Shown: positions 21,400-50,600, counted from the first letter of the stretch. The stretch: DNA of 64,000 bases from Ruditapes philippinarum (GCF_026571515.1 NW_026852746.1:248001-312000); one strand, 5' to 3'. Notes: generated by a model from the letters alone, not told the origin. Translations and numbers: made by a program.

Positions 21400-22320
21400 A
21401 CCTCCAATGTGGAAACATTTTTTACTCGAAGTGCTTGGTTCATAAAACATTTATAGAGGTCTACTGCGCAATGCTATACCATCAAAAAATAGAGGCATAT
21501 TATGTATCAATAGAAAATCAAATCTTTAGATATGCTTAAAAGAGATTATTTTGATTTTTATAATTATCCACATTTAGAAGATAATGTACCTCATGCATCG
21601 TCATATGGAGTATATTTCTCTCAGTAAATTAAATTAGCTAGGGCGTGCGAGTCGTGTGGATGATTTTAATGAACGAAATCAATCTGTTACTAGCAAACTT
21701 CTTAAACAAACATATCGCTATCATAAATTGCGTAACATTTTTACTAATTTCTGCATTTTAATTCAGATTTAATTATAAAATTTGATTTTGATTTAACACT
21801 CTTTTACGATTATGTATTATGAAGTCTAATTTCTATGGAGATGAAGTTTATTAACTTCGTAGGTTCATATCTGGGCTTAGAAAACCTGTTAAAACTCCCT
21901 AGTAGTGTTAATTATACTACACATTTCAAGAAGGTACTATCTGTGTTCCTTCATTTGTTTAACATATGTGTATTGTTACATGTTTTAAATGTTTTCACTT
22001 TTTGAGATGTCTTATTTTGTTTAATTGTCGTTTACGTTATTTTCTTTCCATTTCCCATCGTATACAATTTTGTGCCTGCCCATTTCTACCTATTTTCCTT
22101 ACACCCCTTGTCGCTTAACTTTTCAGTATTTGCTCCTTTTAGTTCTTATCATTTATCATTTTTCACTTATTAAATGCCCCTCTCCTGCTTTCTCCGCTCA
22201 TGTGTCCTCTCCCGATTTTGGTTCGATGCCTTCTGGGTAGACTGCTGTTATGGCTGAATTGTGTCGGGGGCTGCGTTCTGTGAACGTCGTTTTTGCCTTG
22301 TTAATCTTTATTCTCATTTT
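21400..22320 (+). mobile_element. 5'-truncated, decayed Penelope-like retroelement (RT C-terminal part and 3' end)
   Basis: From 21562: NYPHLEDNVPHASSYGVYFSQ*IKLARAC../VDDFNERNQSVTSKLLKQTYRYHKLRNIFTNF, matching the invertebrate PLE RT thumb motif (FP.LDGDVP...SYGVYISQL.RFAR.C...F..RN..LT.KLL.QGYRYHKL). T-rich tail ending GGGCTGCGTTCTGTGAACG; boundaries approximate. Confidence 0.75.
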
Positions 22321-26600: not shown

Positions 26601-29600
26601 AGGACTTTTTTATATATACAAATGTACATACTCACAAGCTAAAAAGTCAATATTTGTATAATATAACGGTGCGCTGTTTAATTCCAATTTCGCACAAAGC
26701 TAGGGATTTAAAGAATGTAAATTGCTTTTCTTTCTTGGCCTAAAAATTAAAGAAGAATAAAAAGGTACTTTATTTTCATTTTTCATTAAATATGAAATAA
26801 AATAAAATCTTAGATATTTTCACTCGCCGTTCCGTCCTGTAAAAGTGTATGGATTTCTTTTTCATATATCATGAAAATATATTCCATATTCCACACAAAT
26901 GAAAAGAAATATGCTCTTAATATTTGTCTTATGCTTTCAATGCTCCAGTTATTGCCTAAAATAAATACGAAACAGAATAAAATCTGACTTTAAATCATTG
27001 AACTTGTAATGCTGTTACAAACTTTGTTTAAGTTGAACCTCAAATTTCACGGTCAAAGTTTTGATTATATGATTATAGCGTTTTAGCTCCTGAAATTCTA
27101 TAATTGAATGGATTTATGTATTAATTTTTCTATTAAACATGAACAACAAAACAAACATATTTGTTATGGTCCAAAAGGAAAACATAGATGCAATGTAGAG
27201 TGTTCGTTTCAAACTTAACACACAATACGAATATTTAAATTATAAGGGTTTTCGCAGCAGAATGATAATGGTGAATTTGCGCTATTAAGTAATTTATACA
27301 TGTAAAGCCAACGGGCACATACTTGTTACGTGAATAACATAAGCGCTATATTACGAAAGACCGGTGGTGACATTTCACGTTCACGAATTCATGATTTCAA
27401 GACTTTAATATTTCATTACTTTTAGAGTGAAATGTTGAATTTTTAAATCTTGAATTCATGAATTCATAATTTCATAATTTCACGATTTCTCTTAAAAACC
27501 TGAATAAATGAAATAATGAAATCGTGAAATAATGAAATCGTGAATTCATGAATTCACGTATTCACAATTTCATTTTTTAAAGTGAAATCGTGAATTCATG
27601 AATTCGCGATTTCATTATTTCACGATTTCACTTTAGAAAATGTAATCGTGAATTCGTGAATTCACGAATTCACGATTTCATTATTTCATTTATTCTGGTT
27701 TTAAGAGAAATCATGAAATTATGAAATCGCGAATTCATGAATTCACGAATTCACGATTTCATTATTTAAAGTGAAATCGTGAAATAATGAAATCGCGAAT
27801 TCATGAATTCACGATTTCACAATTTCAATAATTCTATCAGTGACGTCAGAAATGACATGCGCGGTCAGACAATTTGTGAAAGGAAAAGCTCATTTGAATC
27901 TGCGCATATTACTGGATATCATCATGGCACGTTTTTTTAGCAATTTGGCAATGGTAAGTTGTTTTTATGTGATTGTTGAATTATATATCCAATATATATC
28001 TAGTTCACAGATTTTATAATCGGATTGTACATTTTGAAAAATCTTCAAACATCTTGACAGGGATGGATTTGGACAGTTTAATCATAAAACAGTAAAGTTA
28101 ATGTTATTGTTATTCTCTGGTTTTCATTTTAAAACTGTTTTCTTAAAACTGATTATAAACTTGGCTATTGTTTCTGGGAGTTTGAATTTAATGAATGGAA
28201 AAAAAGTATAAGCAACGAGCCAAAATCAGATTTTATAGATTAAAAAGAAAAAAGTATATTTGATATTCATATGAGTTCCAATAATTTAAGATTTTAATAA
28301 TTCATCATTATGTGACGTAATATCTACAAAGATTTTGCCAAAAATTGGCTCTTTTTGGTTGTTGCACGCTTCCGTTAAACATTAGGCAGAAATCATTATG
28401 GGTTAACCGACCTCCCTTGTCCTACGGCCATGAACAGCATTAAAATTTTTATTAAAGAATGTAGTGAATTAAACACTGATAGAATCTTCTTTTTTCTATT
28501 TTTCAGATTCTGCTATTGTCGCATGTAAAAGGATATTATGGCGTATTCACAAGACCCGCAGCGATTCATGAAACTACAATGCAGGTTATAACCCATTATT
28601 TCACCATGGGATATAAGTACAAAGAAATATAAAGTGCATAGAATAAAATTGAGTTTAAGACATTTGAAAAGAGTACTTAAATCTCTAAATTTACGTCGAG
28701 GGATCCCTGACAGCATGATTGACGAAGCGATTCGAGTAATACTTCAGGATTTTTCAGGGAGTGGGAAGTGTATTGGGTACAAAACAATGTGGAAACGACT
28801 AAGGCTGAAGTATGGACTAAGGATGTGTCGTTTTACCGTTCTTCGATTAATGTGGATTGCTGATCCAGCTGGAATGGAAAGGCGAAAGAGAAAGCGATTA
28901 CTCTGACGACAATATTTTTGTCCTGGTTCTTATATTTTGTTTGGCATATTGAAGGATATGACAAAATAAAGTCATTCGGATTCGCTATACATGGTCAATT
29001 GATGGATATAGTAGGCGAATCGTGTGTCTGTCTGTTGGAACAAGAAATAACGATCCAAAAATAGTTATAGATATTTTCTACAAACCGTTGATAATTAAGG
29101 CGCCATTATTTCAACTTTAATTCGTAGTGATCGGGGCACAGAAAACGTAATAGTTCGTCAGCTACAGATATTTTCAGACAAGGCCATGATGATGCCCATT
29201 CAGGACGAAGACGCTTTTTAGTGGGCAAAAGTACTTGAAACCAAAGGATAGAGTCTTTATGGGCAATGTTACGCCGACAAGGCATGGATTTCTGGATCAA
29301 CTTATTTAAAGATATGCGTTGCACAGGTCTTTATAATGATGCAGATATTTTTCATCGACAATTTTTATTATATTGTTTCATGCGATCTTCAAAATTTTAT
29401 GACAAAACTTGCATCAGTTGCATGACATTTCATCTTGTTCAAAGAAAGATGGTTCTCAAGGAAAACCTGAGATCTTGTTTACCATACCCGAGTTGAAAAA
29501 GAAGAAAAGTTATCACCGTAATGTTCACCATGGTGATATGGTGATATAGATATATGTAAAACATTATATATGCGGCAACCAAACACGTCGGGCTGTTTGC

Positions 29601-32600
29601 CTGAATGTATTAACTTGTTTGATTTGATAAGTTTTCACAGTAGAGTGGAACTGATGAATACTGAAGCTGCTTTTTATCTTTATATATCTATCATATAATT
29701 TATTGATCGAATGTAACAATATAAGTTTTCATGTATACATAATTTATGTTTATGTTTATAATGTATTTAATACTTTAGCTTCTTTGTACTTAAGTGCAGG
29801 GTAAACGTTGGCAACTTTAAATTTGTCCGTCGTAATAGTACGTCATTTATTCGTAAAACAGTTTCTATTCAAAGCACACTAAATAGCGGTTTCAGTCTTG
29901 TTATGACTTTGTCGAAAAATGTTCCACTTTTTTATGATTTTGGCTACACTTCAACAAAGGTAACACAGGTTGTTTCCCTATGAATGTTTCGACCCAAGGA
30001 CGATTCCATTCCAGAATTTTCCGGATGTTTCAAAACAAATTATTGACAAAACATATTTTACCATGTTATTCTATATTATTCCGAATAGTATAACAATGCA
30101 CTGGTTGAGGTAGAATCGTCTATTGTCAACTCGTAACTGGGGGTGGGGGTGGAAACGTTCAGTCACCATTTCATTTGTAGTGATTGAATTTTTGGTGTGT
30201 TTCCCTTTAGGTTTTATTCATCCATTGAAAGAACAAAATATTTCTGAGATTATTTTTGTAAATAATGTTATATTTTAACGCTGTACACATATATCACGAT
30301 AAAGTTTCAGGGGAGCGATGGCCTAATGGTTAAGGCGTCTGTCTCGCAACCTCGGAATCGTGGGTTCGAACCCTAACGGGTCACGACCATGATTCCTCAT
30401 ATGGCACCAGTACTGGTTGGTTCAAGGAAGCGGACTCGAGAATGATTTATATAAGTATAAGAACTTCTTTCACAGTCGAGCTAAAATAAATAAGTTTAAA
30501 CTAAACTAATGTGTCAGGTTTACAGAGATAACTCTTTTATATATCGTATCTAATATATTTAGTAAATATTCTGATAAAATACCACGAAATATTTGACAAA
30601 AAATTAAAATAGGTAGCCACACAACATAAGTATATCTGAAAATTCCATTCTAAAAGTCACTTGCAGCAATAAAAAACTTGTGAGCCTTGCAGAACGTTTT
30701 GACATTAATTATAGTTTCATCAAAGATTGTCCTTGCACTTTTATTAGCAGTTTTGGACATTTCCTGGGGTCTGGTCACGTAATTAACCGTAACGTACTTA
30801 ACAAAATTAATTTTCATTTTGGCTTTTCTTCCTTATTAAAAAAAGACTTTTATAGATTTTAACTGAATTGTAAAGGTTTCGTTTTCCTATGATCGTTTAA
30901 GCACGTTTTTACAATTCACTTGAAGTATTATATTATTGGTGTCATGTATACAGTTCATGTTAAAAATATTAGATAGTTTTTTTTATGCCTAAACAAAAAA
31001 AATGTGCTCGAAACATTTGGATTAACGACTATTTTTGCACCATAATAAAGTATAAAAAGTACATTGACAAAAATTGATTGTCACATTGTAAAAAAGTTAT
31101 AATGTGCACAAAAGTTGGTAATGTAATTTGGTTTTAGGGAACAAAGCAACTATATATTCGTTTATAAAGCATAAAAGTACCTTGTAATATTGATTTTACT
31201 ATTTATCAAGGCATATACATGTGTAATTTAAAACCTTATAATTTGTTGTTTTTTCTGAATGTTTCACAAATCTTCAAACCTTCAGTTTACGGCTTATTTA
31301 CATACTACATATACATACATTGGGGAATATTGCTGCAAACCAAAAGAAGAAAAACTTCAAACATATACTAGTACTTGGATATAATGACTGTTCAATAACA
31401 CGGCGCTCGTATTTGTAAAGTCAAAAAAGTGAAAAGCTCACTTACTTTTGCAGCTAATCATGTGACCAGATTCGAAATTTACTTTAGGATTTTATTATTA
31501 TAGTGGCGAGAGATTCAATTGTCTATTAATAATTGTCATGTCAAGTTACACTTGATTAGCTTTTAAATAACTACGTTTAATTCTGAAAAATGTCCATTAG
31601 AATTTTTTTTTTCGTCGACTACTTGTTTAAAATTTTGAGCGTTGTAATTCAGAACTCTATCACTACCGCACAAAAAGTACTATCACTTTGTAAATTTTTT
31701 ATCCATTCTTGTACATTATTATAATAAAGGCATTATAAGCTGTAACGTCTTAGTAGTCGTTACAGGAATGCTGTGGTGTTTCAAGATATTCTTTTTTATT
31801 TTAGAAGTGAAATACCATAATTTTGTTTTCATTTTTGTTCATAACAATGTCATCGGATAAGAGTTTTGGATTTTACATTTTGGCCTACAACAAACGCATA
31901 TAAGGGCTTATAGTCGTTATTAGAATATTAAAAATCCATCTTAAGTTTTTTTATTATACAAATGTATTGTGGACACAAAGCAAACGACAGACATTAACAT
32001 AAAAAGCTAAAATGTGATTATTTTTTATTATTAATACTGTTATCATTACTACCATAAAAGTTAAATTGAAAACAATTAAAATAACCATGATCAAACTAAT
32101 CCCAAATTAAAATCTAGTGATATTTAATATTAATCATCTTGAAAGAAGGCTGCATTAGCAAATGCCATACCACAGCATGTCAAACATCAAAGAACACATT
32201 AACTAAATGATTAACACTATGAGATAACAATGGAGTCAATAGACAAAGACCAGTCGTTGATTAGTCAGAATTATTTTATCAGTTGTAAAAATAAATCATA
32301 TTTCAGGTAATTCAGATTATTTTCTAAGTAACCATTTATAACACAGCTTTTAGACAGAGTAGTTGCGTTCTTAACCATTCGGATTTATAGACCGGTCACA
32401 CAAATGATCAGAAACCGAGTGGATTTAAAAAACCCTTCATAAAATATTTTATGATAAAAAGTGAACACAGATACATCTAAACATTAACATTTAAATAGCA
32501 ATATCAACTTTAAAATTGAGATATATATGGTGGCATTTTTCTGCCATCAGATAACCATATAACTAACTAATTAATTAAGAGGTTAACTAGTTACGTAACT

Positions 32601-35600
32601 AGTTAACCTCTTAATTACCTAGCTAGTTATGTGGTTAACTAGTTACGTAACTAGTTAATTTTTCAATAAATAAAAGATCATAACAGGAAATAAATGCATG
32701 TTAGTTCCTACAACTGCCATCCTTTTATTATTTTGCAACTTAATATTATGAGGTTAACTAGTTACGTAACTAGTTGACCTCCTAACTAGCTAGTTAATTA
32801 AGAGGTTAATTAGTTATGTAACTAGTTAACCTCTTAATTTACTAGTTAATTAAGAGATTAACTAGTTACGTAACTTGTTAACATTTTAATTAACTAGTTA
32901 GTTAAGTGATCGATATTCTTATAGTCAAGCTAAAATGTCTTTTGAATGTGATTACACACTAGGTATTAAGAAGACTTGCAGCATCTGCTACATTTTTTCT
33001 GCAAGTGTTGCAGTTTAACAACAATGTCAATAGCACTTGGTCTTTTTGTCATATCATACATTAAACATTTCTTGACAACTTCAATAACTGCATCTGGAAA
33101 TTCTTCCCCTCCTTGTAGATAACTCAGGCCATGGGGCTGCATCCCCTTTTTCATGTTTTCTTCCAGTATTTTAGTACCCTCACTATCAGAGTCATCATTA
33201 TCATCATCCCCTCCATCATCAATATTCCAGATTTCTTTTCCAGTATCACCCAGTCCAGGTTCAACATTCCCTTTAAAATGTTTTTCAACTTCACTCTTGA
33301 TATATGCATAAGTAGATTCATGCTTTTTCAGTCTAATTTCGTGTACTCCACCTTTTTCTTTATTTGATAGTCTGCGAGTGCCCGACATTGACCTCACTTT
33401 GCAGGCAATTTTTATTGTCATTTCTTTATCTTGCTCAGGCTGAAAAATCAAAATATCAATACAATGCATCGTATATGAACATATTGGGTATTTCAGGAGC
33501 ACACTGATATTTATAAGACAGCATTGATGGCTCAATATTGTTAACCTGAGTCCATCTGCAATAATATCGGCAACAAACTATGATAAACTATCAGTCTTAA
33601 AGAAAATTACGATCAATTGTATATTTCATATTTTTACTATCTGAAATGGTGATTTAATTTTCACTATAGCGATCATTTGACCAAGACTTGTGAAATCCTG
33701 ATGACAATGGCAGACTGTATGATAAATATAAGGTTATTTCTAAAATTTGACCTTGTGTCCTAGTTTCGGGTCTGACATGGCCATATTCAAATTAATCCAT
33801 TAGGCATGAATGGTAAATCATTTTGACAAAGTTTCATTGACATAACATAGAATTTTAGTCTCTTGATTGTAAACAATAAGATAAACAAGATCAACAAGGA
33901 AAGGCGGCATTCAAGGAACGTAATCCCCACATGACCCAGCAACAAGAACCAGTGGCAAGGAGCCCAGGCGGTCCCCGACAAAAACAGGACAGGGCACAAG
34001 GCGGAGCACGGACAGGCTCATCACCAAAACGACAAACAACCTGTCACCGACAAGGAACACAAAGAAAACAAGCAATTGAGCGAACAATAGAAAATAATAA
34101 GGTTTATGTAAGATTTATCTTGTGTTGTTTCATCATACATAAATTCAGACTATTCTTTTTTCCTAGATCAGTGATCACATGTGTCACCTGCCGATAGCAA
34201 TTTAATTATGGGCCAACTTGCTTTTTTCATTTACGAGCCATAACTCAGCTTAACTTATTCACCAATTTAATGGGTTAGACATGCTCTTGTACTTAAGGTA
34301 TCAATGCCATACCCACTCGTTTTAATTCAAACCTGAAACTATATGCTTCAGATCAAAGAAAAAGATGAATACATAGGTTAGATGTAGGCAACACATTCTT
34401 TTTATACTCAAGGCAAAAGCACAACATTGCATCGGCCTAGATGACCATGACCTCTGACCCAGCGAACTAGCTCATGTGCATGACAATTCATGACATATGA
34501 AATTCCTCCATGAACAAAGAAGTTATGGCACGAACAAACAAATACTGAATAGCCACTTTGACAACTATCTCGAGCTCAGTGGAAAAAAATCCTTTAATGA
34601 CTATGCATAATAACTTAAAGTATAAGCAAGATACAGTACCAATAAACACAAGATTTTTTTGCGAAACCCTCCGCCTCACTATGGAAATTATTTGTCCCCA
34701 GTAATATTAAAATCCCTCTATGCATGTAGGATTTACACTTGGGTCATGGGTTTGCGCTGACTCCCAAGTGTGACCTTGGCCTTTGAGCAGCAGATCTGGG
34801 TGTTGTATAAGATATACCACCACCATGGTGAAATTTGGTAACAAAATTGTTATCCTTTAAAGAAAGACAAAATATAGACGGGACAAAGCAGCTGCAGGAC
34901 AGACGCCAAGATGGACTTTCTTAAATTTTGGTTTCATGTGAGTGACTAATCTTTTGTTCTGAAAAGACACACAAACACCAAAGCAAGAGGGCCATGATGT
35001 CCCTATATCGCTCACTTGTTTCATAACCGCCTCCGTGGTCGACGGGTTAGAGTCGATGACTTCTAATCCAGTTACCTCTCTGGCGTGGGTTCGATCCCCG
35101 GGAGATGCTTTGGTAGTTGAGCGCGGAGGAAGGTAGTCTAGTACTGGTGTTACTCAGCAGGAAAGATGGTTAGGGAGCTACCCGCCAATATGACTGAAAT
35201 ACTGTTGGGGAAAAGGCGTAAAATGAAACAAACAAACAAACAAACCTGTTTCATCTGACATTTGGCTTTTGTCATGGCCAACATCCTACCAAGTTTACGA
35301 CTAATTTGACCCCGGGGTCATGATTTGAACAATCTTTGGTAGAGGTCCACAAGTCAATGCTACAGGTGTCGTATAGCTGGTTGCACAGGCTAATGAGTCA
35401 TACACGCTATATTCAAAAAGAATGACAAGTCAACATGTATATACATATAATAAGGTTTTTATTTCATAATGTGCACTATGGAACATGACATGATTTATGA
35501 GTATTATAGTTCAGGATGCATACGGACTGACCTTATGTCAGGATGATTAATATATGTAACTCTTAAACGTGTGTATTTATATACATTATAAAATGTCCTT

Positions 35601-38600
35601 AGGACAGGTTGATATTATATATACTATTCTCAAATGTCAGAGAGGGAGTTCGACTTTGGTATTCCACTCGTTCACTTTGTGTGTTTGTATTTGTATATTA
35701 AAAGTATGTAACATCCGTGAGTTCTTCCTACGTTATACGACAACGGTTGATTTGGCGCCTAAGACCAGCGATGTCGAAGCGACGATTTTGGATAGCGGGG
35801 ACACAACGAAGTACCTGTAACAGAAAATTAAAGGTGAGTGATCGTTAATATACCAGTAATTTGCTAATTTTGAAGATGTCAGATCAAGAAATAGCTACAA
35901 TTTTTGAAAATTTGTCAGATAAATTGAACAATATTTCAACTATCATAGGTACACAGGGTTTATCAGAAATAGTACAAAATTTTGATGGAAATACTAAATA
36001 TTTTAATGACTGGATAAAATCTATAGAAAAATATGCTGTTTTAAAAGGTTTGGATGATAATAAAATAAAATTAGTCGCATTTCAATCAAGTAAAGGGACT
36101 GTAAGCGATTTTATATGTAGATATTTGCGTGATAATCCTCGTAATTCGTGGAAACAATTAAAAGAAGAAATAAGTACTAGATTTGGGGAAATTAAAGATT
36201 TACATCATGAATTTTTATCTTTTGAGAAATTTTAAACAAGATTTGGAGAAAGTGTTCAAATTTTTGGGGGAAAAATTTATTAATTGTGCTGAAACCGCTT
36301 ATGAAAATTATAAACTAGGAGATAATAGTTTAATTGAACTTCAGTTAGTAGAATTGTTTACGGATAATTTAGCGCATAATTATTTAAAACTTAAACTTAT
36401 GAGAGAAAAGCCAAAAACTTTACAAGAAGCAATTACGTGCGCAATGAATGAACAGAATTTCAGAGCTAGATTTTCTGCCAGAGTAAAATTTTCAAATTCT
36501 CAAAATCACGCAAAATACAATAATTACAGAGCAAATAATTCTATTCATTATTATACAAGAAATTTTTGCGTGTACTGTAAGAGACCAGGTCACCATGTGC
36601 GTAGTTGTAGATTTAGGAAAAATGAAATATATTCTGTATTTCACCGACAAAATTTTTCACGATTTAAGAAAAATAATAGCAATAATAGTTTGAAATCAAA
36701 GATTAAGTGCTGGAAATGTAATAATTTTGGTCATATTATGCGAGAATGTCGTAAACAAAATTTTTACGACAGAAACAAATAAATTTTCAGGAAAACTAGC
36801 AAGTTCCTGTCACAAAGGGTCATTGACAGGAACGATAAAATACCAAAATTTAGTATAGCATTAGCTGGAAGCCCTAATTCGTGTTTGATTAAAAATAGAA
36901 AACTATAAATACAGATCGTTAGTAGATTCAGGTGCTGAAGTTTGTCTTCTGCATCGCAGAATATATAGAAAATTAAAGAATCCCCCTCAACTTATAAAAC
37001 AGAAAATAAATTTATGTTCAGTTGACGGAAATTATTTACATATAGATGGTTATATAAATCTTAATTTTCAAATAGGGAAACAGAAACAACTCAAAAAATT
37101 CTATGTTGTTTCTAAAATGAATAGAAATATTATTTTAGGCCGTGACTGGTTAACACAAAATGGCGTTAGATTATATTTTGATTTAGGCTGCTTAAGAGTT
37201 AATAATACATATGTACCCCTCGAAGAAGATATTCATATTGCATCAATTGTTAGATTAAAACAGGATGTTATTCTGAAACCTCAAACAGTTAATGTGTGCA
37301 CTGCTAAGTTAAAACAAAATCCAGGCTTGGAAAATGATAAATTATATGAATTAAAAAGTATAGAAACTGGAATTATTGCTTCTGAACCAGGCCTTATGAT
37401 AACAAATTCTGTTATGAAACTTTCGGCTGATAGAAGATTTCCTATTATGATTGTCAATAATACGCATAAAACTATAAGATTAAAACGAGATTCAGTAGTT
37501 GCTAAAGTTTCAGAAGTTGAGAGCATTAACTCGGTTACAGAGGCTCTTCAAACAACTTCCCCTCTTAACAACGATTTCGAACGTGATATTCATACACCTT
37601 CAGAGCATTTTAATATTGTTAGAGACTTATTAAGGAAAAATAGAAATATTTTCGCAAATAAAGATTCTGAATTATCACAGACAGATACTGTAACCATGAA
37701 AATACCAACAGGTAATCATCCTCCAATCAAATTACGCCCATATCGCACACCTTTAAACAATAGAAAATTTATGAGTGACGCAATCGATGAGATGTTAGAT
37801 GCTAATATTATAAGAAGAAGTCATAGCCCCTTATTCATTTCCTGTTGTTATTGTCGGAAAACGTGACGGCAGTAAACGGTTTTGTGTTGATTTTAGACAA
37901 TTGAAAATAAAAATTACAAAGCCAACATCATATCCTCTCCCATTAATTGACGATATTTTAAACACTACTAGGGTCTTCAAAATATTTTACAACACTAGAC
38001 ATGCGCTCAGGCTTTTTGGCAAATACCCGTGCATGAATCAGACAAGGAAAAAACGGCTTTTACGACATTCCGAGGCTTGTTTGAGTTCAACCGAACCCCT
38101 TTTGGCCTAAGTTTTCTGCCCCTGGAGTTTTCCAAGAACTCATGTCACATGTCTTACAAAGGTTTAGAGGCATTTGCTGTCAGTTATCTTGACGACATTC
38201 TGATATTTTCTAAGTCATTAAATGAACATTTATCACATATACAGACAGTATTTTCAAAGCTTAAAGAGCATAAATTAAAACTTAAACTGAAAAAGTGCAG
38301 TTTTATTCAGCAACAAACAAAGTACCTTGGTTTTATAATTGATCATGAAGGTATAAAACCAGACCCAGAAAAAGTAAAAGCTATTAGGTCACTTCCGGTA
38401 CCAAAATGTGTTAAAGATGTCAGATCTTTACTTGGTGCTGCTGGTTTTTATAGAAGATTTTGCCCTAAATATTCTAAAATTGTTGAACCTCTAATCAATC
38501 TTACAAGAAAACGTGTTTTGTTTAAATGGACAAAAGAATGTCAAGAAAGTTTTGAACAATTAAAGAAAATGTTAAACACGTATTCACTTTTAGCATTCCC

Positions 38601-41600
38601 AGACCCAAATAAGCCTTATATTCTATACACGGACTCCTCAGATTAAGTGGTCGGAGCATGTTTAAGTCAGAAATGTGACAACAATCTGGTATTGAAAAAC
38701 CTATATACTTCTTATCTCATAAATTAAGTGAATCTCAAAGAAAGTACAGTACCATAGAAAAAGAAGCATTCAGTATTCATTATGCGTTACAAAAATTAGA
38801 TGTTTATTTACATAATGCAGAGTTTACTATATTTACAGACCATAAACCTTTAAAATATCTTCTAGAAGCACCTATGCAAAACAAAAGAATTCAGCTTTGG
38901 GCTTTAAATATTTCTGCCTATAACTGTAAAATTGAATATTTGCCAGGAAAATTAAATTTAATTGCCGATTTCTTTTCTAGACCTCCAGCTGATGATAAAA
39001 ATGCTAACAAGTCCGATATTGAACTTTATGAGCCCGATATAAATGACAATGCCTTCGAAATAACAGTCTCAAATTCAAGTAATAATTCAAATAATGATAA
39101 TGTACATGCCGTGAAAACTGATGAAAGCTATGAAGTAAATGCTTTTGATTCTACGCACTTTAATGCCAAAGAAATAGCAAACAAAGAATACCAATTTCAA
39201 GAGCCAATTGTAGAAGATATTAAACAATTCGAAAAATTAAATATGGCCTCAGAGCAAGATAAAGATCAAACTATTCTCGAACTGAAAATGTTACTACGTC
39301 ACGGACAGCCAACTAAATCAGTGCAGAGCAAATATTTAGAAATTGACCAAGTTCTTTATTATCTGTCTAATGTAGATGATAATCCTAATCTTAGATTGTT
39401 TGTTCCGCAACACTTAAAACACCTTGTCATTACTCAATATCATTTAAATAATGGTCACCCAGGAACACAGAGGTTATTTACAACAATAAAACAAAAATAT
39501 TTTTGGCCAAATATGTTCAAAGAATTGTATGAATATGTTTTTAAATGTGTTGATTGTCAGTCACGTAATCTTACAAAAATAAAAGCACCTATGGGCGAAA
39601 CAAGAGTACCAATGTATTCATTCCAGACCATGAGTATCGACGTTATAGGGCCATATGAGAAAACAATGAGTGGTAACCGCTACATTATTTGTTTTATTGA
39701 CCTTTACAGTGGTTATCCCGAGTGTTTTCCTACTGCTGACAAAAGTACTGATACAATTATACATTTACTTTTAGAAGAAATTTACCCTAGATACGCATGT
39801 CCATTACAAATTGTCACTGACAATGGATCAGAATTCACAAGTAATGCTTTCAAAGAAACACTTAAAGCGTTAAGAATTGATCACGTGCGTACAACTACCT
39901 ATCATGCTGCCGGAAACGCGAAAAATGAACGTTCTCACCATGTCATACATGATATCTTAGCTAAAAGAATCCAGGGAAATCTCAAACAATGGGATATTCA
40001 TCTTAACATGACACTAGCCGCACTTAGATTCAATGTCTCTAGGACTTCGAAGCATAGTCCATTTTATTTGTTATATAACCGTGATGCAATTCTCCCGGTG
40101 GACCTGTTGCTACAACCAAGGCAGCGCTATCATGGCGAAGAGTATCACAAAATTGCATTACAAGAACAACATAATACTTTTCTATCTGTTTATAAGAACC
40201 TTAAAAAAGCAAAACGAGAACAAGCTAGCTATGCAGATAAGACCGCAAAAGATATCAAATTTGAAATAGGCGATCCCGTATTTTATAAAAATTTTCGTAA
40301 GAGAAGCAAACTAGATGTGAATTGGAAGCCATTTTATAGAATTATGGAGAAAAGGTCACCATTAACTTATATAATAAAAAATCAATTTGACAATTCAACA
40401 GTTAAAGTCCATGCAGAACAAATTAGGCTTGCAAATATTAATGACTGGTCAATACCAAAAGCAGATAATACAGGCAGACCAAAAAGAAATGCCACATTTG
40501 TAGTTACACCTGAAAATAGCGATACTGATGATGCTTCAGAAATACCAGAATCAGTATTACCCCAAGTTGCTAAGAATGTTAGAAAAGAAAGGTCAAATTC
40601 TGATAGTGAAGATGATGATATTCCATTAGCCGAATTACAGAAACATCTTCGACAACAACAACAAAGTTCAAATAATGACAATACTCAAAGTAATGCACAT
40701 TCAGAAGAAATGCAATCGCAGACTGATTCAGAATTATCAGACTCAAATTCCATACAAGTAAATAGCAATCCTCAGTCACAAAGCAGCATATAATGCTATT
40801 CAGTCAGATTCAATGGCTGATGATAATGATTCGGATAATGAAATGTTTATAAACTCTATTTTAGTAAAAAGAAAAGTATTGTAAAAACCTCGATATAAAG
40901 TATCTGGTAAGGTAAACACAAAAGTTACAAAGTAAAGATAAAGGGTCGAAATCAAGTTTTAAAATGATTTTACAAGGATTAGCTGAATTGTTATAGAACG
41001 TTATATTCCGTGTTTATATGCTATACTAATTTTCGGTAAATTGACCTCAGGCATTGTAAATAGTAATTATGGAAAGAAGAAAATATATATGTTAAAAGAA
41101 AACATTATAAAACAAAACAGAAAATTACATTATTTAACCATACATCTTTATATTTTTGGTGGTTGTATTCATTTACATTAATTTTCAAGTTGTTTTTATT
41201 AGAACTATATATCTTAGATTTTTTTTTATTGATTAAAATGATCGTTATTCGCTATATGTTTATTAATAGATCGGTTAATTAAAATGCATTTCAAAGTAAA
41301 TGACAGCACTTAATCATGAGTTTCAAATTGATTATTTACTTTATTTCATATTAGAATAACATGTGTATACATACATGTTTCAACTGTCAACGCACAATCA
41401 TTAAATAAAGTTTAAATTGGGATAAGTCTTATTGTGGAAATAAAACTAAAGTTAATAGCTTAGTTAAAAAGTAACAAAATACATGTTTGTCTAGAAAAGT
41501 AAAAAAAATTTTAAATATCAAGTATTACATAAATAAGATACTTACACTAGAGAACATCTTTCATTGGAATTCTTATCCTATGCATTTTATGACAGTTGTC

Positions 41601-44600
41601 TTGTTGTTCATATATCTGAAACAAAATTATGTTTATTGTATATAATATCTATTAACCGATCTGACAACGGACGAAAATGCAAAATATTGGTCTAACGATC
41701 ACTTGTCGTCCAGTCAAGACAGAGAGGTGCGAGCGAATTCGCCGGTACAGTAAAACACCTCCTGACTAGAAATATTACAGTCAGCCTCTACGATGTCAAA
41801 CTATGTACAACAAAAACCATGCAGATATAACCATAAACACCTTCTTCGATGTAAAACCATGCAGATATAACCATAAACACCTTCTTCGATGTAAAACCAT
41901 GCAGATATAACCATAAACACCTTCTTCGATGTAAAACCATGCAGATATAACCATAAACACATTCTTCGATGTAAAATGATATGAAATAAGCGTCTACGAC
42001 GTTTAAAATACATAACTATGATGTTACAGCCGACAACAACAACAACAACAACAACAAAATTGTGGAATCAAATAAACTTTTGTTCCTGTCTTCAACCAGA
42101 GAAGCCGAAAACTTCCGTTTATCAATAGAATGTGTTTTTCTATGTGTTATATAAACTTAAAAACAAAAACCCAGAGAAATACTGATGACAACTTCTTATC
42201 AAAATAATTATTTGTGCGCGACAGAGATATCCAAAATAAATATCACATAAACATTTGCGAGAATCGTGCAACAGCAAACTGTTAATTTAATTATCTTTTA
42301 CTCAAAAACATTGCTACATAACTGAAGAATTATAGATCTATCATCACTTTGTTGTATTGTTCAATACAAGACATTCTTTTTACAACGACGAAACAAGAAC
42401 AGCGTTTACAGATGTGCCAATAAATATTCAAATATAACTTTATCAACTTGTGTATAAAGTCTACGTTTACACATATCAAATACATATATATAAATTTAAA
42501 AGAATCTTCAAGAACATCAAACATTTATGAACAATTATGAGTGTCAATTTAAAATTATACTTTATAAAGCTACATACCAACGATTTGAAATTCCCGTCAC
42601 GACGACCAAGCCATACTGATGTCAGCAAGTACCTGTTACAAAAAACATACCTGTCACAGGAAGTGTTCAATGCGCATGCACAATACACGTTTTACAGGAA
42701 ATGAAACACCTGGACATTTTATCAATTATCAATTGTTTATAATATTTTTTAAACTTTTTCGTATATAAATATCTTTTCTACTCTTATCATACATATAATT
42801 CTGTTAAATTTTATACCTTAAAGTTTTTCTAATTAATATTCTTAAAATAATTTGTTCTTTGAAAATTGTTAACTTATTTGATTGTTTTTATGTTTACTAG
42901 ATCTATAGAAATTAACTTTTTTTTCTCTTTTTTTATGATGAAATAAAGGAAAATATTAACTGATAAAAAAAATTTCGAAAAGATTATCTTTACATTTAAC
43001 AATTATTATTTTTTTACTTATTAAAAACATTACAAAATTGTTGAAGTAAATTATAACTTACCCGACTGCAGTATCCGAAAACTTTTTAAAAAAGTGACAA
43101 GAAAATATATTGAGCGAATATTTCCGAATATTGTTTCCTAAGGCGTTTTTTCTTTTTAAAGATAAAGTAATAAAAAAAGTCATTAGATAACATCTCTGAC
43201 CGGACATCTCTGACCGGATATTACCTTAAGGGTAAAACAGATGTCAAGTTGATTTTAGATTTTAGATTTTTATAATTTGTTAGAACGAGTTTGAAATGTT
43301 TGATATTAAATAATAACTTGTTCAATACTTTTTTTTTAAATATTTTTTTTTAATAAGTAATGGTGGAATTGTCGTATAGCTGGTTGCACAGGCTAATGAG
43401 TCATACACGCTATATTCAAAAAGAATGACAAGTCAACATGTATATACATATAATAAGGTTTTTATTTCATAATGTGCACTATGGAACATGACATGATTTA
43501 TGAGTATTATAGTTCAGGATGCATACGGACTGACCTTATGTCAGGATGATTAATATATGTAACTCTAAAACGTGTGTATTTATATACATTATAAAATGTC
43601 CTTAGGACAGGTTGATATTATATATACTATTCTCAAATGTCAGAGAGGGAGTTCGACTTTGGTATTCCACTCGTTCACTTGTGTGTTTGTATTTGTATAT
43701 TAAAAGTATGTAACATCCGTGAGTTCTTCCTACGTTATACGACACAGGCAAAATATCTAAGCCCTAGGCCTTGTGATTCTTAAGAAAAAGATTTTCTAAG
43801 ATTTACCTACGTAACTCTATGTAAAAATCAAGTGGCCCCTGTGTCATGGTCAATTTGATCCCGGAAGTCATGATTTCGACAAACTGGGTAGAGGTCCACT
43901 AGTCAATGTTACATGCAAAACATCTAAGCTCTGGGCCTTGGGATTCTTAAGAAGAAGATTTTTCTAAGATTTTTCCATATAACTCTATGTAAAATCAAGT
44001 GGCCCCTGTGTCAAGGTCGATTTGACCCCGGGGCTCATGATTTGAACAATCTTGGTAGAGATCCACTAGTTCATAGGGTGAAAAGTAGGTTGGGATTCTG
44101 AAAAATATGAGTAAACCCCCATCCCCCCTCCTAGAATAGACACTGAGGATGCAAGTTCGAGACGTAGATCTAGCTCCGATTACATTTTTTTTCTTTCTTT
44201 TGTAAACCCCACAGATAACCACCCCCTCTTTTTATCGACCCAAAATAAAATAATCCCTTTTAAGATTTTAGAATATTGGTGAAACCCAAAAAATGCTGGA
44301 CTAACATAAAAAAATGAGGATTCTCTGTGTGGACAGATTCTAAAACTGTATCGATACCTGAAAAAGCTTATGTACATTTATGCATGATTATGAAAAATAT
44401 AGTGTCAAATAAACTTTAATCTAAAGGAAGAGTACTTACTTTAAAAAAAATGAATTGGAACTCCTGTAACTCTCGCCATCTTTACTCTGAACGGAAAAGG
44501 CCCTAAGCGCATGCTCAAGCGTCGTGTCAGACTTGACATCGTGACGTAACAACTGTGCAGATGAAATTGTGAATTCGTGAATTCCTGAATTCACGAATTC

Positions 44601-47600
44601 ATAATTTCACGATTTCACTTTAAAAAAATGAAATCGTGAATTCATGAATTCACGATTTCATTATTTCATTTATTCAGATTTTTAAGAGAAATAGTGAAAT
44701 TATGAAATCGCGAATTTTTTAAAGTGAAATCGTGAATTCGTGAATTCATGATTTCACGATTTCATTATTTCATTTATTCAGGTTTTTAAAAGAAATCGTG
44801 AAATTATGAAATTATGAATTCATGAATTCACGATTTAAAAATTCAACATTTCACTCTAAAAGTAATGAAATTTAAAGTCTTGAAATCATGAATTCGTGAA
44901 CGTGAAATGTCACCACCGGTCTTTCGTACTATATAGTTTTAATTTACAAATATCATCACAATATGAGTAAATATAATAAAATAAGGGTATAGGCCATCAT
45001 TTATTAATACAGGATCAGGGAAAATAATATAGTAATAATCACCTTGTATCATTTTTTAGAATTATTGGAAATAACATGAATCTTGTCAATTAAAATAAAA
45101 TAATGTTTGAAACGTCTTTCTCATGTCCAGTTATTTTGTTTATCAAATTTGAATAAGTAGACCAAATGCATACAAAAAACATGCCTGACAGTATGTTTAC
45201 TTTCATCGTCGGCAATTGACACAAGAAACGTCCAGTGCATTTTTATGTCTGTGATCTTATATTAGCCGTCATTGAAACGCTTGCACCAGCTGAAAAACCA
45301 TGTCCTTAGGTTAATTAATAGGTTTATTAATTGCTCTTCGTTTATTTAATCTTACGGCCTTCCCGTATAGAGGTGAAGTAGTATCCCCCTTTATTGGAAA
45401 TAAGTAACAACCGCACAAATTTTCAGTTTTTTAACGAGTATCTTATTTCTACATTTAACGCTATGATGAGCACTTAATGTATGAATAACGCCATACTTGA
45501 ACCTGAAAGCACTTAATAAATACGAAACTTGTAGTGAAATACTAATAGTTCCTCTTATATATTTATATTGCAATTATTTTGCAAGTTCGGACTATGTACA
45601 GATTACAGAAAAGGGCGTCGGTGGAACAACAAGCAGACACTGTGGCTTTGATCCATTGACATTTATCACATTCGGAAACGTAATGCAACTACAATTCAAG
45701 TCGGACGGTTCAACTGAATACAAGGGTTTCAAATTCATCATCAAGTCGGTGAAAAGTAATAATTTAATTTGATTGTGATTAAATATACATTTCATGAAGT
45801 CTGTATTTTTACTTTCAAAATATTCTATTTAATATATTCCTTTAAAATGATTTCTTAGCCTTTGGTCAAACAGTTGTGAACCCTTATAAAGCCCTGGCTG
45901 GTATAAATATGCATTCAAATCGTTATACCACTCTATCCAGCCCGCATAGCTCAATCGGTAAGAGCGCGAGACTTGTAATCTCAACATTGTGGGTTCAATT
46001 CCCGGGCTTGCTAACTAAAATTGAGGTTCCGTGTATGAGAGCTTAAACACTAGGCACGCTAAAGAACCAGGAGAAGCTTCTGCATTGGGGCATCTTTCTG
46101 TATCTGTATCTTGCACTATCCTCCAAAATATAAAATGACTAACAGTCTTCTGGAGGTCTCACCCATATTGGCAACCGGTGGCGAGTATAAATAAACTCAA
46201 ATACACACATATACCACTCTGCCGTTGTGACCTTTCTTTAATATTCATCATTATTATAATAATATATGAAATTGTATCTTACCCGCTTGATATAATCATG
46301 GCATGTTAAGATCATTGGACGTGATATTTGAATTACTCTTGTTGAATTTTTTGTGTTTACAAAAACAAATTTCACGTATTTGCAGAACTTTCGGATGACT
46401 TATTTTGCATTGGTAGTATATCAAGTGGCAAGAATTCGAGCATAATGAACAAAGAAACTTCAGGAGACAGTTGTTTTTACCGATTACAGGTGAAATAACT
46501 ATATTTAATAAACAGAAACAGTAATTTGGACAGACTTATATCTGTGACTTTATACAATGTTAACTTTATCTATTCTCTTTTAAAATTACTCATCTTTTTT
46601 TTTCGTCTCTCTCAGAATACGTTAACACGTTTTTACGTGTATAGTAGCAGGATTTTGATAAGAATTATTTCAATTGGTTATAATTTATGAGATTATGCCG
46701 TTTTGCAGGAATGCAAAAGATGTATGATTTACTATTAAATGAGAAAAATTATATACATTTAAAAGAAAAAAAATCTTTCAGTTTTAAAGAAAACAAAAAT
46801 AAAAACCGTAATTGTACATTTTTTGTAATCATCACATTTTAACCTTAATTATCACATTTTAACTTTCTCTGTGTCATCTCCTGTACAAATTAAACATATA
46901 TTAAATGTGATGCTAGCCAATAAGGTTTTGCAGGCACCAAAACACAATGATATAACGCTGACACTAAAATTGCTAGATTTTGGATCAGCTAGTTGTGAGG
47001 AGGAAAGTATAATCATTTATGAAGGACAAAGTACACGTAAGTTTTATAGAATTCTATCGCTCTATAATTGTATAGTGTGTTTAATAAAACATGAAATGTC
47101 TTTAAAGTTTAAAAACTCATCTCACAATTTCTTAGACTAGTATTTTTTTGTGTTAAGTCTTACTTAAGTCTTTGCAATAAAATCTTTACGTGAACACTTT
47201 CTATATCATTTTGCAAATTAGCACTATATTATAGTATAATATGAATAAACATGTCTAAGAACGTTCAAGTTAGTCATTTGCTTCCTTTTAAATGTTGTTT
47301 TTAATATGATTTTCAGAAGGAAGACCTTTAGGTACGATATGTAGTGATAGTGATCTCGGAATACAACCATACCGTGCAAGTTCAATGTTTATTGAGTACA
47401 GGAATCAAAATAGAATACATGTTTGTAGAGAACAATTTTGTATTATCAACGACCCATTTTTCGGTTAGGGGAAATGATGGTAATGCTTACTTTTTTAATA
47501 AAACAAAACAACAATAAAATATATATTAAATGTAAACAAAACATGTCTCTATGAAACGAAAATCATTTCCAATTTAAAACATACTAAGGCGAATGCGTTT

Positions 47601-50600
47601 TATGGAATGTGTTGAAAAATAGTAGAAAATAAAAACCAGCTATACAGACTTTTGATATAAACAAAATCAAGTGGCCAGTTGCTTATTGTCCCCCGCCTTT
47701 TCGAAGAAAAAAGGGGTGAAAAGAAATAGGCTCCGTCCGTCCGTCTGTCCGTCCGTCCGTCTCACTTTCGTGTCCGGTCCATAACTTTGTCATTTATCAA
47801 AGGAATTTTAAATAACTTGGCACAAATGTTTTTATAATAAGACGATGTGTCATGCGCAACAACCAGACCCCTACCTCCAGAGTCAAGGTCGCTTTTGCTC
47901 ATTCAAGGTCAACATTGTCTATTTGAGGGTACATGTATATGTCGTGTCCGGTCCATAACTTTCTTATCTATGAAGGGATTTTTTAAATACTTGCCACAGT
48001 TGTTCACAATAATCTGACGATGTGTCATGCGCAAAAACCTATCTCCAAGGTCAAGGTCACACTTGGAGGTCACAGATTAACATAGTCTGTTAAAGGGTAT
48101 ATTTTATGTCAGGTCCATAACTCTTTCATAGATTAAGGGATTTTCAAAATACTTGGCACAAATAGTCACTACAATAAGAGAATGTGTCATGCGCAACACC
48201 TGTATTCCTATCTCCAAGGTCAAGGTCACACTTAGAGGTCAAAAATTAGCATAGTCTGTTATAGGGTATATTTTGTGTCCGATCTAGAACTTATTCATAG
48301 TTCAATGGATTTTGAGATAACTTGGCACAAATAGTCACAATAATAAGACAATATTTCAAGTAGAACACCTGCTCCCCTACCTCCAAGGTCAAGGTCACAC
48401 TTAGAGGTCAAAGGTTAATAGAGTCTGTTATAATGTATATTTTGTTTCCCGTCCATAACTTCTTCATAGATTAAGGAATTTTGAAAATACTTGGCACAAA
48501 AAGTCACAATGATTAGATGATATGTCATGCGTAATATCTGTGTCCCTACCTCCAAGGTCAAGGTCACACTCAGAGGTCAAAGATTTACATAGCTTGTTAT
48601 AGGGTATATTTTGTGTCCAGTCCATAACTTTTTCATAGATCAAGGGATTTTAAAAATACTTTGAACAAATAATCACAATAATAAGACGATATGTCAGGCG
48701 CAAAACATGGATCCCTACCTCCAAGGTCACACTTAGAGGTCAAAGATTAACATTATCTGTTATATGGTATATTTTGTGTCCGATCTATAACTTCTTCATA
48801 GTTCAAGGGATTTTGAAAATACTTGGCACAAATAGCTACAATAATAAAATTATATGTCATGCACAACACCTGCATCCCTACCTCCAAGGTCAAGGACACT
48901 TAGAGGTCAACGCTTGATATAATAGATTTTTAAATTGTGTGTATCATTTTGTTTCTTTAATAAATTAATTGTTGCATTTGCAGATGTAGCATTGATCATA
49001 ATTTTTGACTGAAAATTCTGAGATCCATACCTCAGTCTTTTTAAATAGCACAATTTTATGCTTCATACTTCCCCGAGGCGGGGGACGTTGGTAACTCTGT
49101 TACAAATTCTTGTTATCTTTAAAGACTGTTTATTCTAAAATTATATATATATAAAATCACTGGAACCAATATTCAATCCGCATTTAAAGGATAAATATTT
49201 TTCTTTATAAAAATGTTTAAGAGATAATTAATACGTTATGCTCCATTTATTGAATAAGTAAGCCGTTTTACCTCTCCCCGATTACTTAATACTTTGCATT
49301 TAGAGTAGCAATCTTTAGCAAACAAGGCACGTGACTTTTGCAAAAATCAAGCCTCGATTTCTCTTCATATTTTACATTGAAGACGTCCTTGGGGAAATGT
49401 GTGGTTGGCACTCGTCCCTTTTAAATGAAGTTTAATAAATCATAATGGCAATTCACAGAAACTATATATCTAGTACATTCGGATTTCATAGGAAATATTA
49501 CGTTTCACTAATTATACGACCTTGCAATAAGAGAGAGAGCTCAGCTCTAATATTAAGGCATCTAACGGTTATCAGGACCAGACTAGGCATACGTTGACGC
49601 GTTTCTGTGCTTTATTATTATTATGTAAAATGTAAATTTTTTACCCAAGAGCCCAAATAACAAACAAAATAATGCGAGAAATCGGGTTGGCATCGCTTAA
49701 GAATGCAAAGACTATTCCATCAATTGGACAGGTTACAAACTTTGGTTTAGTTGGAAGAAATCATATTATGTATCACTTTTTAGATAATTATAAAAAAGTA
49801 AACCTACGCACGTCTTGATTGCCATGACTGCAATTTAAGACAGTGGCTTTGAATTTATTGAGTCTGTTTTAACAAAGTGATTAAGACTTGGTACCTACCA
49901 CCGATCAAATTATGATGTTAATTAATTTAAGAAAACAGAAATTTAAAGTAATATTAGGCCACTGAAATAACACTTACAAGATCGTTTATCTACTTAACGG
50001 AATTATACCAAATACCATATTCTTACAAAGAAGGCTTTATGACTTACCAATTAGCCCTTGTACGCCTAATTGCTTGTTCACATGCACAAACACGTACGTA
50101 CAATTTGAATAAAACTTAAATTAATTGCTCAATTATTGTATGCATTAAATAAACATGGTCACAAAATGAAAAAAGAACATGATGTCTTGTACTTTTATGA
50201 CAATATTCAATTTTGCGTTTTCTACAAGTGTTCATTATTTAATTTATGAATAATTATCATGTTAAATTTACTTGCAGACACTGATGGTTTGTTAAAAGAA
50301 AACAGTACAAACAGTGGTATCAATTTATGCACTGGATCAAAATACAAACACACCAAGAAGTGGGCAGTAGCGGTTTGTAATGATAATCTTCCTCGTCATG
50401 CTGTACAGGTAGAATTCGACTACTTTGACATGGAAAACGCAGATGACTGTATCTTTGGTTCATTGAAACTTTTGGCAGGAGACAGAGAAGGTATTTAAAT
50501 TCTATTATAACATTCCTCGTAATGTTGTCACTATACACAAAGAAGAAGAAAACGGTGTTAAACTGCCAGTAAACACTGGTTAGGGTATACATGTTTATTC

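Follow-up and report, generated by a model that had tools for sequence, protein, structure and literature searches.

The stretch analysed here, referred to as the window, comprises 64,000 nucleotides of the genome of the clam Ruditapes philippinarum (GCF_026571515.1 NW_026852746.1:248001-312000), with positions counted from its first letter. At 27352-44928 it contains an old, non-autonomous copy of an IS3EU/GingerRoot DNA transposon, the transposase of which is frameshifted and which was later split by a Ty3/gypsy retrotransposon. What is left of the second gene of this transposon lineage is its C-terminal stump, a minus-strand open reading frame (ORF) at 32969-33577. Where intact, the second gene lies tail-to-tail with the transposase inside its element's terminal inverted repeats (TIRs), combining a ubiquitin-like N-terminal module with a TKL-like Ser/Thr kinase; other IS3EU lineages, represented by coral-type contigs and by other clam loci, carry the same module joined to a HECT E3 ligase. 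We assign a probability of about 85% to this explanation as a whole, in which the window holds a decayed IS3EU copy and the second gene of the lineage encodes an adaptor-enzyme built from the N-terminal module and either a kinase or a HECT domain.

A mobile unit with seven full copies

IS3EU elements are defined by TA..TA ends and 6-bp target-site duplications, or TSDs (Kojima & Bao 2023, PMC10045372). An earlier, sequence-only reading of the window had reported exact inverted termini and a 6-bp TSD, and both observations stand: the two ends are inverted and identical over 57 nt from the tips (TACGAAAG...CTTTCGTA, with TA..TA ends as in IS3EU/GingerRoot), and CTATAT occurs on both flanks. About 450-480 bp inside each tip are taken up by GAATTCACGATTTCA-type repeats in both orientations, and the left array is rich in matches, both inverted and direct, to itself (27405-27834) and to 44561-44876.

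The left end has many copies across the 1.4-Gb genome. Retrieval of copies by their TIR, as the sequence-only reading had proposed, yielded six further full-length members of what we call family A. They measure 7.8-12.7 kb, over their whole length are collinear with the window copy, and all six have the same tips and a perfect 6-bp TSD of their own (AAATTT, GGAAGG, CCAATC, GCAAAG, CATTAG and CTTTAA). Since all seven full copies are flanked by distinct perfect 6-bp TSDs, chance is excluded and the element is a true transposon, which has been mobile as a unit at least seven times.

Remains of a transposase and of a kinase gene

The sequence-only reading had assigned the element to IS3EU and had described it as a cassette of a DDE transposase and a protein kinase. 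Its assignment to IS3EU is confirmed by the tips, the TSDs and the type of transposase, which has an IS3-like DDE core of the rva_4 family with a helix-turn-helix (HTH) region upstream and without an HHCC finger. The window copy owes its insertion to a transposase of this type, which duplicates 6 bp of the target. Its own gene is homologous to HTH_21 and rva_4 but frameshifted. Pfam searches of the window gave HTH_21 at E 2.4e-5 and weak rva_4 pieces in three frames at 28592-29493, and in tblastn the pieces at 28628-29543 are collinear with the transposases of the related families D and E described below, the frame shifting along the way. A sister copy (L021:1994-2398) has an rva_4 match above the cut-off (E 1e-10), and the transposase frame is intact in none of the seven family A copies. 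IS3EU transposases of clam, scallop and coral-type contigs start, ahead of the HTH, with some 20 hydrophobic residues that resemble a signal peptide (window 27924-28632; P0023, P0042, L067:323-1582, L072:1634-2893).

The kinase claim also survives in part. The minus-strand ORF has no Pfam match, a word search matched nothing other than its own gene call, and against the PDB it aligned at a non-significant E of 1.4 to the last 36 residues of CSK. Its link to kinases emerged only through paralogues in the same genome. A six-frame search of the clam genome matched the copies of its own family and contig C12191 (38% identity, E 2e-11), and the transposon kinases matched it in tblastn at E 2.5e-11. 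A profile built on these kinases scored 35.6 bits, with residues 114-191 of the ORF aligned to profile positions 217-290 of 292, and a C-terminal motif, HL(H/Q).KC.RC, is held in common. That the likeness arose by chance, in an element that has no second gene, would fit the missing Pfam and word-search homologues and the poor match to CSK, but is hardly credible: the genomic match is to a true Pkinase exon in a sister element with near-identical 20-nt tips, and the profile score and the common motif speak for homology as well. Six-frame, Pfam, tblastn and profile matches to transposon kinases together refute it.

The ORF keeps the last 75-90 codons of the kinase domain, with homology to subdomains X-XI of the C-lobe, and lacks the Gly-loop, VAIK, HRD, DFG and APE motifs of a catalytic PF00069 domain. 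Judged by its sequence, gene 2 of the window is the remnant of a kinase gene and not a kinase: the C-lobe homology is there, and no kinase is encoded. The sequence-only reading had suggested that intact copies be examined for a full kinase with VAIK, HRD and DFG, and family A holds none; nor was an N-lobe or the N-terminal domain detected in its seven copies by tblastn with the kinases of families B, C, D and E. A kinase-derived gene does lie at the same place in all seven full copies, so it belongs to the element and is not the chance cargo of one copy. An alpha-kinase identity, which fungal IS3EU elements suggested, was rejected, as the 21 genome matches of Alpha_kinase (PF02816) include none at the contigs or positions of family A copies. 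No HECT domain is present in the window element.

Convergent kinase and transposase genes in related clam families

Related families in the same genome hold the second gene in better condition. Family B, on C12191, has a minus-strand kinase exon 4.4 kb downstream of a plus-strand rva_4 transposase, both inside an element with tips TACGAAGGACC.. and the TSD GAATAA; the exon covers the C-lobe, with APE and DIWS motifs and a Pkinase match of E 4.9e-17. The outer 20 nt of the tips are nearly identical in families A and B (27352-27371 versus C12191:237089-244385), while the subterminal arrays are wholly different and the transposases, judged by eye, about half identical. This comparison of sequences suggests a single transposase-binding tip that can be combined with exchangeable arrays. 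A pseudogenised full kinase domain on C11165 served as the query for further paralogues, several of which lie in long open frames.

In family D (C7309, C11450 and C12346) the transposase, for which NCBI gives a 417-aa model (P0023), is on the plus strand and a kinase ORF of 793 aa is on the minus strand. This kinase has the motifs GEGSFGTV, VAIK, HRDLKPEN, DLG and APE, and its Pkinase match (L036, E 5.4e-42) spans the full domain above the Pfam cut-off. Its nearest solved kinases are CTR1 and B-Raf, which makes it TKL-like. On C12346 the family D element measures 13.6 kb (185788-199387) and contains both genes between TIRs of 208 bp with tips TACGGAAGCCC, related to the tip of family A, and the TSD ATCTTT. 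The copy on C11450 has mismatched 6-bp flanks (AAAATA versus TTCGTA), perhaps as a result of rearrangement or of recombination between copies. The family D copies also have a private 1.6-kb tandem-repeat block, the placement of which differs between them (L038+L037+L039 of C12346, at 20419-22007 of that assembly of pieces; L040+L036+L041 of C11450). In family E (C12824) the kinase is divided between an open frame of 1076 aa and a 137-aa C-lobe frame that overlaps it, and is convergent to the transposase. A full PF00069 domain with catalytic motifs is thus found in the sister families D and E, and also on the metagenome contig L042.

The association of the two genes is recurrent. Of 15 kinase paralogues, eight lie 3-8 kb from an rva_4 match, in each case tail-to-tail (150 of 742 rva_4 candidates scored), and the linkage expected by chance is about 1%, given at most 742 rva_4 candidates in 1.4 Gb. 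A homology search with a 668-aa kinase returned, beyond the clam's own protein, generic kinases only. The second gene typical of IS3EU is represented by a remnant in the window and by intact convergent genes in families D and E and on contigs L042, L051, L067 and L104. The kinase is a resident of the transposon lineage, neither cargo of a single copy nor a host gene. The proposal of the sequence-only reading, a kinase built into the transposon and not picked up by chance, accordingly holds at the level of the lineage, in which the relatives of the window gene are kinase genes convergent to rva_4 in other IS3EU families.

An N-terminal module with a kinase or a HECT domain

Metagenome contigs were scanned with the transposase alignment. 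Contig L042 has a transposase and a convergent kinase that is 75% identical to that of family E (Pkinase E 3.7e-50). On eight coral-type contigs, the minus strand downstream of the transposase encodes a homologue of the first 130 residues of the kinase proteins of the clam, hereafter the N-domain, and the two have the motifs V.LGW.H, GGG.R, LFFP.G and LYL in common; the N-domains of a clam kinase and of a coral-type HECT protein match at E 3e-12 in pairwise BLASTP. The C-terminal part of the coral-type genes is a HECT domain (E 2.8e-15, 7.1e-9 and 9.4e-10 on L051, L067 and L104), and on these three contigs both genes lie between inverted subterminal arrays. About 18 sufficiently long metagenome contigs have a convergent HECT-type ORF, judged by its C-terminal motif.

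The N-domain matches no Pfam family. A profile of it retrieved 1,741 cluster representatives among 1.84 billion proteins, and 37 long matches include seven with HECT and one with Pkinase, the latter being a 991-aa multi-copy protein of Mactra antiquata (P0200 / KAL4238672). Other N-domain proteins come from Hydractinia, Actinostola and Ptychodera. Outside the clam genome, a kinase convergent to rva_4 is found on L042, and N-domain and kinase are combined in the Mactra protein. The Mactra protein is annotated as 'Rik1-associated factor 1', apparently a mis-annotation of a transposon gene.

Both enzyme types occur in the clam genome: besides the kinase families, at least four contigs (C5854, C6130, C9387 and C7841) have N-domain, HECT and rva_4 together in a convergent arrangement. 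On C12060 and C15684 a HECT match is convergent to an rva_4 match. The clam HECT-type loci are known from match coordinates alone; the pairs extend over 10-25 kb, and the HECT type seems to be multi-exon there. Across eight loci the identities of transposase and N-domain are correlated (r 0.97, Mantel p ~8e-4), as is expected if the two are inherited together. On C8833 a cluster of Alpha_kinase matches (43595-48254, plus strand) is convergent to an rva_4 match (59709-59927, minus strand) 11 kb apart, which, going by match coordinates only, may represent a fungal-like, alpha-kinase type of IS3EU in the clam.

Models of the accessory protein

The front part of the L067 accessory protein (441 aa) was modelled with AlphaFold2 and 60 homologues, at a mean predicted local confidence (pLDDT) of 80.9. 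The model consists of a short SAM-like helical head (residues 1-34), the N-domain (80-200, pLDDT 96-98), a 50-residue helix (246-298) and a UBX-like beta-grasp domain (305-375); Pfam also recognises UBX in the L067 protein, at E 2.9e-4. Foldseek matched the N-domain and the UBX-like region to di-ubiquitin, ISG15, FAT10 and the UBX domain of FAF1.

A model of the complex between the L067 transposase and residues 75-380 of its accessory protein scored 0.62, and the best of three controls scored 0.00. Among solved complexes 51 of 78 attained this mark, and among mismatched pairs 2 of 108; for eukaryotes the figures are 39 of 65 solved pairs and 2 of 126 unrelated ones. The docking runs had at least 51% of contacts in common, with a partner pLDDT of at least 69. 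In the predicted interface, helix 274-297 and residues 339-343 of the accessory protein face residues 225-255 and 362-371 of the transposase, the former of which adjoin the second catalytic aspartate. The model supports a putative binding of the accessory protein to the transposase core.

Possible roles of the second gene

These features could be combined in a protein that is both adaptor and enzyme, and that would modify the transposase or a host factor post-translationally. Its conserved front end, composed of the SAM-like region, the ubiquitin-like domain, the long helix and the UBX-like domain, would dock on the catalytic core, and the exchangeable back end would perform the chemistry. For most lineages this enzyme would be HECT, for the venerid and mactrid bivalves a TKL-type kinase, and for fungal IS3EU perhaps the alpha-kinase. 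That the enzyme is exchanged and the front part retained is in keeping with a function in the regulation or clearance of a protein complex. The docking model of L067 would favour the transposase as the target, a host factor being the alternative. In family A this function would be lost, and its members would move, if at all, with proteins supplied in trans; that the family has spread with both genes dead indeed implies that the proteins act in trans. We suggest, tentatively and at somewhat less than even odds, that IS3EU/GingerRoot elements of animals encode a conserved adaptor-enzyme partner that controls the transposase, or the clearing of its complex, through ubiquitination or phosphorylation.

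Several observations weigh against so general an account. No copy of family A has an intact transposase or a kinase with VAIK, HRD and DFG, and the spread of this family to at least seven sites with both genes dead indicates that the accessory gene is not needed in cis. Gene 2 showed neither a splice junction nor strand-specific transcription in three RNA runs aligned at 4-6% depth. The docking model concerns a HECT-type pair from a metagenome, and its interface helix and UBX-like region were not recognised in the clam kinase proteins. The co-divergence of the two genes, furthermore, may partly reflect host phylogeny.

Alternatively, the kinase could be passive cargo: an ancestral clam IS3EU would have captured a host TKL-type kinase once, the kinase would play no part in transposition, and its repeated linkage would go back to that single event. 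Host genes do get captured by DNA transposons, TET/JBP genes move passively among transposon families (PMC12730594), nothing sets the kinase domain apart from other TKL-like Pkinase domains, and the kinase was dead or truncated when families A and B spread. We nevertheless consider passive cargo clearly unlikely. The module to which the kinase is fused is, in other phyla, IS3EU's ancestral accessory gene, with HECT in the position that the kinase takes here; this is a domain swap within a conserved gene and not the capture of a free-standing one. The ORFs of 793 and 1076 aa, moreover, persist although the transposases of their families are only 45% identical, and the kinase type also occurs in a second bivalve family, represented by Mactra. 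A different possibility is that the accessory protein acts on host defence or chromatin, for instance on a silencing or repair factor that would be degraded by the HECT type or inactivated by the kinase type. Enzymes that work against host control are found in viruses and in some transposons, and the fold matches to UBX and ubiquitin-like proteins would suit such a role. UBX and ubiquitin-like folds are usually tied to p97 and proteasome pathways. An escape from methylation has been proposed for the TET/JBP genes of fungal transposons (PMC12730594). We regard a host target as rather doubtful in place of the transposase, the core of which is favoured by the L067 docking (0.62 against 0.00 in the controls), though a host target in addition is compatible with that result.

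Relation to known transposons

IS3EU is among the least studied superfamilies of DNA transposons, and GingerRoot belongs to the same lineage (PMC6839031, PMC10045372). The elements described here agree with both in their IS3-like DDE transposase without an HHCC finger (rva_4), TA..TA termini, 6-bp TSDs and long TIRs, and in their occurrence in cnidarians, hemichordates, fish and molluscs. No defining feature differs; the window copy is merely decayed and contains a nested long terminal repeat (LTR) element, and as such represents the ordinary decay of a known superfamily.

The sequence-only reading had allowed that its two-gene cassette might be undescribed, which overstates the novelty. Described IS3EU elements are said to 'encode only two proteins' in PMC8232023 (citing Kojima 2019) and PMC10853768, and in every TET+ IS3EU element of fungi an alpha-kinase gene accompanies the transposase in opposite orientation (Kojima 2025, PMC12730594). 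The two-gene layout with a kinase partner is therefore known in outline. The clam elements resemble the fungal ones in that the second gene is opposite to the transposase and encodes a protein-modifying enzyme that is called a kinase. They differ in that the enzyme is a eukaryotic protein kinase (PF00069, TKL-like) and not an Alpha_kinase, and in its fusion to a ubiquitin-like N-module, which in other cases is followed by HECT. In the searchable literature we found neither a paper that combines IS3EU and HECT nor a description of the eukaryotic-type kinase in bivalves, the HECT alternative or the common ubiquitin-like module, some of which Repbase may note; the GingerRoot paper (PMC6839031) does not mention a second gene.

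Among host proteins, HECT E3 ligases and UBX or ubiquitin-like adaptors are similar in that the coral-type accessory protein ends in HECT (E 3e-15 to 7e-9) and has ubiquitin-like folds, whereas its gene lies inside a transposon, between inverted subterminal arrays and convergent to a transposase, and its N-domain has no Pfam match. A second element-encoded protein that works with the transposase is likewise known from PIF/Harbinger (transposase and a Myb-like ORF2) and CACTA (TnpA/TnpD) elements. Those partners are DNA-binding or localisation factors, whereas the IS3EU partner carries an enzyme of post-translational modification.

The idea that a eukaryotic cut-and-paste transposon may supply a protein-modifying enzyme of its own can be tested, and the second gene co-diverges with the transposase across bivalves and cnidarian-type contigs. 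It also accounts for hundreds of 'uncharacterized' multi-copy genes in annotations of molluscs, cnidarians and hemichordates. If the adaptor-enzyme reading is true, such transposons would control their own transposase, or the clearing of its complex, by ubiquitination or phosphorylation.

Putative first exons and splicing

The sequence-only reading had further proposed that both genes are spliced, each with a tiny coding first exon within about 100 bp of a TIR. The start codons at 27924 (plus) and 44479 (minus) and the GTAAGT donors behind them (at 27954 and 44439-44434, respectively) are correctly placed; the remainder of the proposal is not confirmed. The ATGs are 572 and 449 bp from the tips, inside of the subterminal repeats, and thus near them only in a loose sense. 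The right 'exon' runs into an in-frame TAA before its donor, the left ATG is absent from the copy on C14861, and the right one is GTG in two copies. A run of T inside both 'exons' varies between 7 and 10 bases among copies, and together with the losses of the ATG this variation leaves no coding constraint visible. Exons and ORF pieces were searched individually.

For transcription, three RNA-seq runs (X22-X24) and the X1 contigs were aligned to a sister copy without the LTR insertion, on its gene-2 side (L015:1-6000). No GT..AG junction was seen there, including at L015:700-750, the equivalent of the right 'exon' donor, which at the depth given above is weak evidence of absence, and splicing of gene 2 as claimed finds no support in these reads. 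Both strands are covered thinly and evenly, nested high-copy repeats being the sole places with spikes, and one contig is collinear with the DNA over L015:2922-3887, across the ORF and the region upstream of it. The spikes (20-100x in reads and contigs at L015:1601-1800, 2801-3000 and 4601-4800, corresponding to about 35100, 33930 and 31900 in the window) are places where reads continue into unlike sequence; they mark high-copy repeats that lie nested in the element and whose transcription takes place elsewhere. One of these repeats encodes a recurrent string, ...GDRTHAREVTGLEVIDSNPSTTEA...

The nested retrotransposon and other features

The features of the window element are collected in Table 1. 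Its span had been given correctly as 27352-44928, but the description as a large transposon left a nested Ty3/gypsy element unmentioned, which makes up 8,378 of the 17.6 kb. Two LTRs of 376 bp (35367-35742 and 43370-43744), about 98% identical and with TG..CA ends, are flanked by the TSD CAGG at 35363-35366 and 43745-43748. Pfam finds zf-CCHC, RVT_1, RT_RNaseH_2, Integrase_H2C2 and rve between them, so that the insert has the LTR ends, the 4-5 bp TSD and the gag-PR-RT-RNaseH-IN order of Ty3/gypsy elements. In all six other family A copies, window position 35366 is directly joined to 43744 and the 8,378 bp are absent. Because this private insertion of 8.4 kb inflates the length, the element proper measures about 9.2 kb and not 17.6 kb.

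Table 1. Features of the family A element in the window, with positions counted from the first letter of the window.
Feature	Position	Strand	Basis or remark
Left TSD, CTATAT	27346..27351	.	same hexamer as at 44929-44934
Left TIR, 57 nt exact, tip TACGAAAGACCGGTGGTGAC	27352..27408	+	end-to-end alignment
Left subterminal array: short repeats of the GAATTCACGATTTCA type in direct and inverted orientation	27409..27840	.	
Left 'first exon', MARFFSNLAM, and GTAAGT donor	27924..27953	+	coding status unsupported
Transposase pseudogene, HTH_21 and rva_4 DDE core, with frameshifts and stops	28483..29612	+	
Inverted-repeat-rich stretch, 895 bp	32044..32938	.	missing from copy C5121, present in other copies
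203-codon open frame with kinase remnant	32969..33577	-	residues 114-191 (33005-33238) align to kinase subdomains X-XI
Filler between kinase remnant and LTR insertion, with high-copy repeats	33880..35330	.	
Ty3/gypsy LTR retrotransposon, private to the window copy	35367..43744	+	LTR alignment, copy comparison, Pfam
Right 'first exon' of gene 2, MARVTGVPIHFF, then in-frame TAA before GTAAGT donor	44440..44479	-	
Right subterminal repeat array	44560..44871	.	
Right TIR, 57 nt exact	44872..44928	-	
Right TSD, CTATAT	44929..44934	.	

In the filler next to the kinase remnant, tblastn detected no kinase N-lobe or N-domain, and a tRNA gene search over 33500-35400, which followed the idea of a tRNA-derived short interspersed element, found none. 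Peptide-like strings of the filler recur at unrelated loci, such as L025. Within the 3' part of the nested retrotransposon, downstream of its integrase, a 40-bp unit is repeated in tandem at 41773-42012, where four of its copies are nearly perfect.

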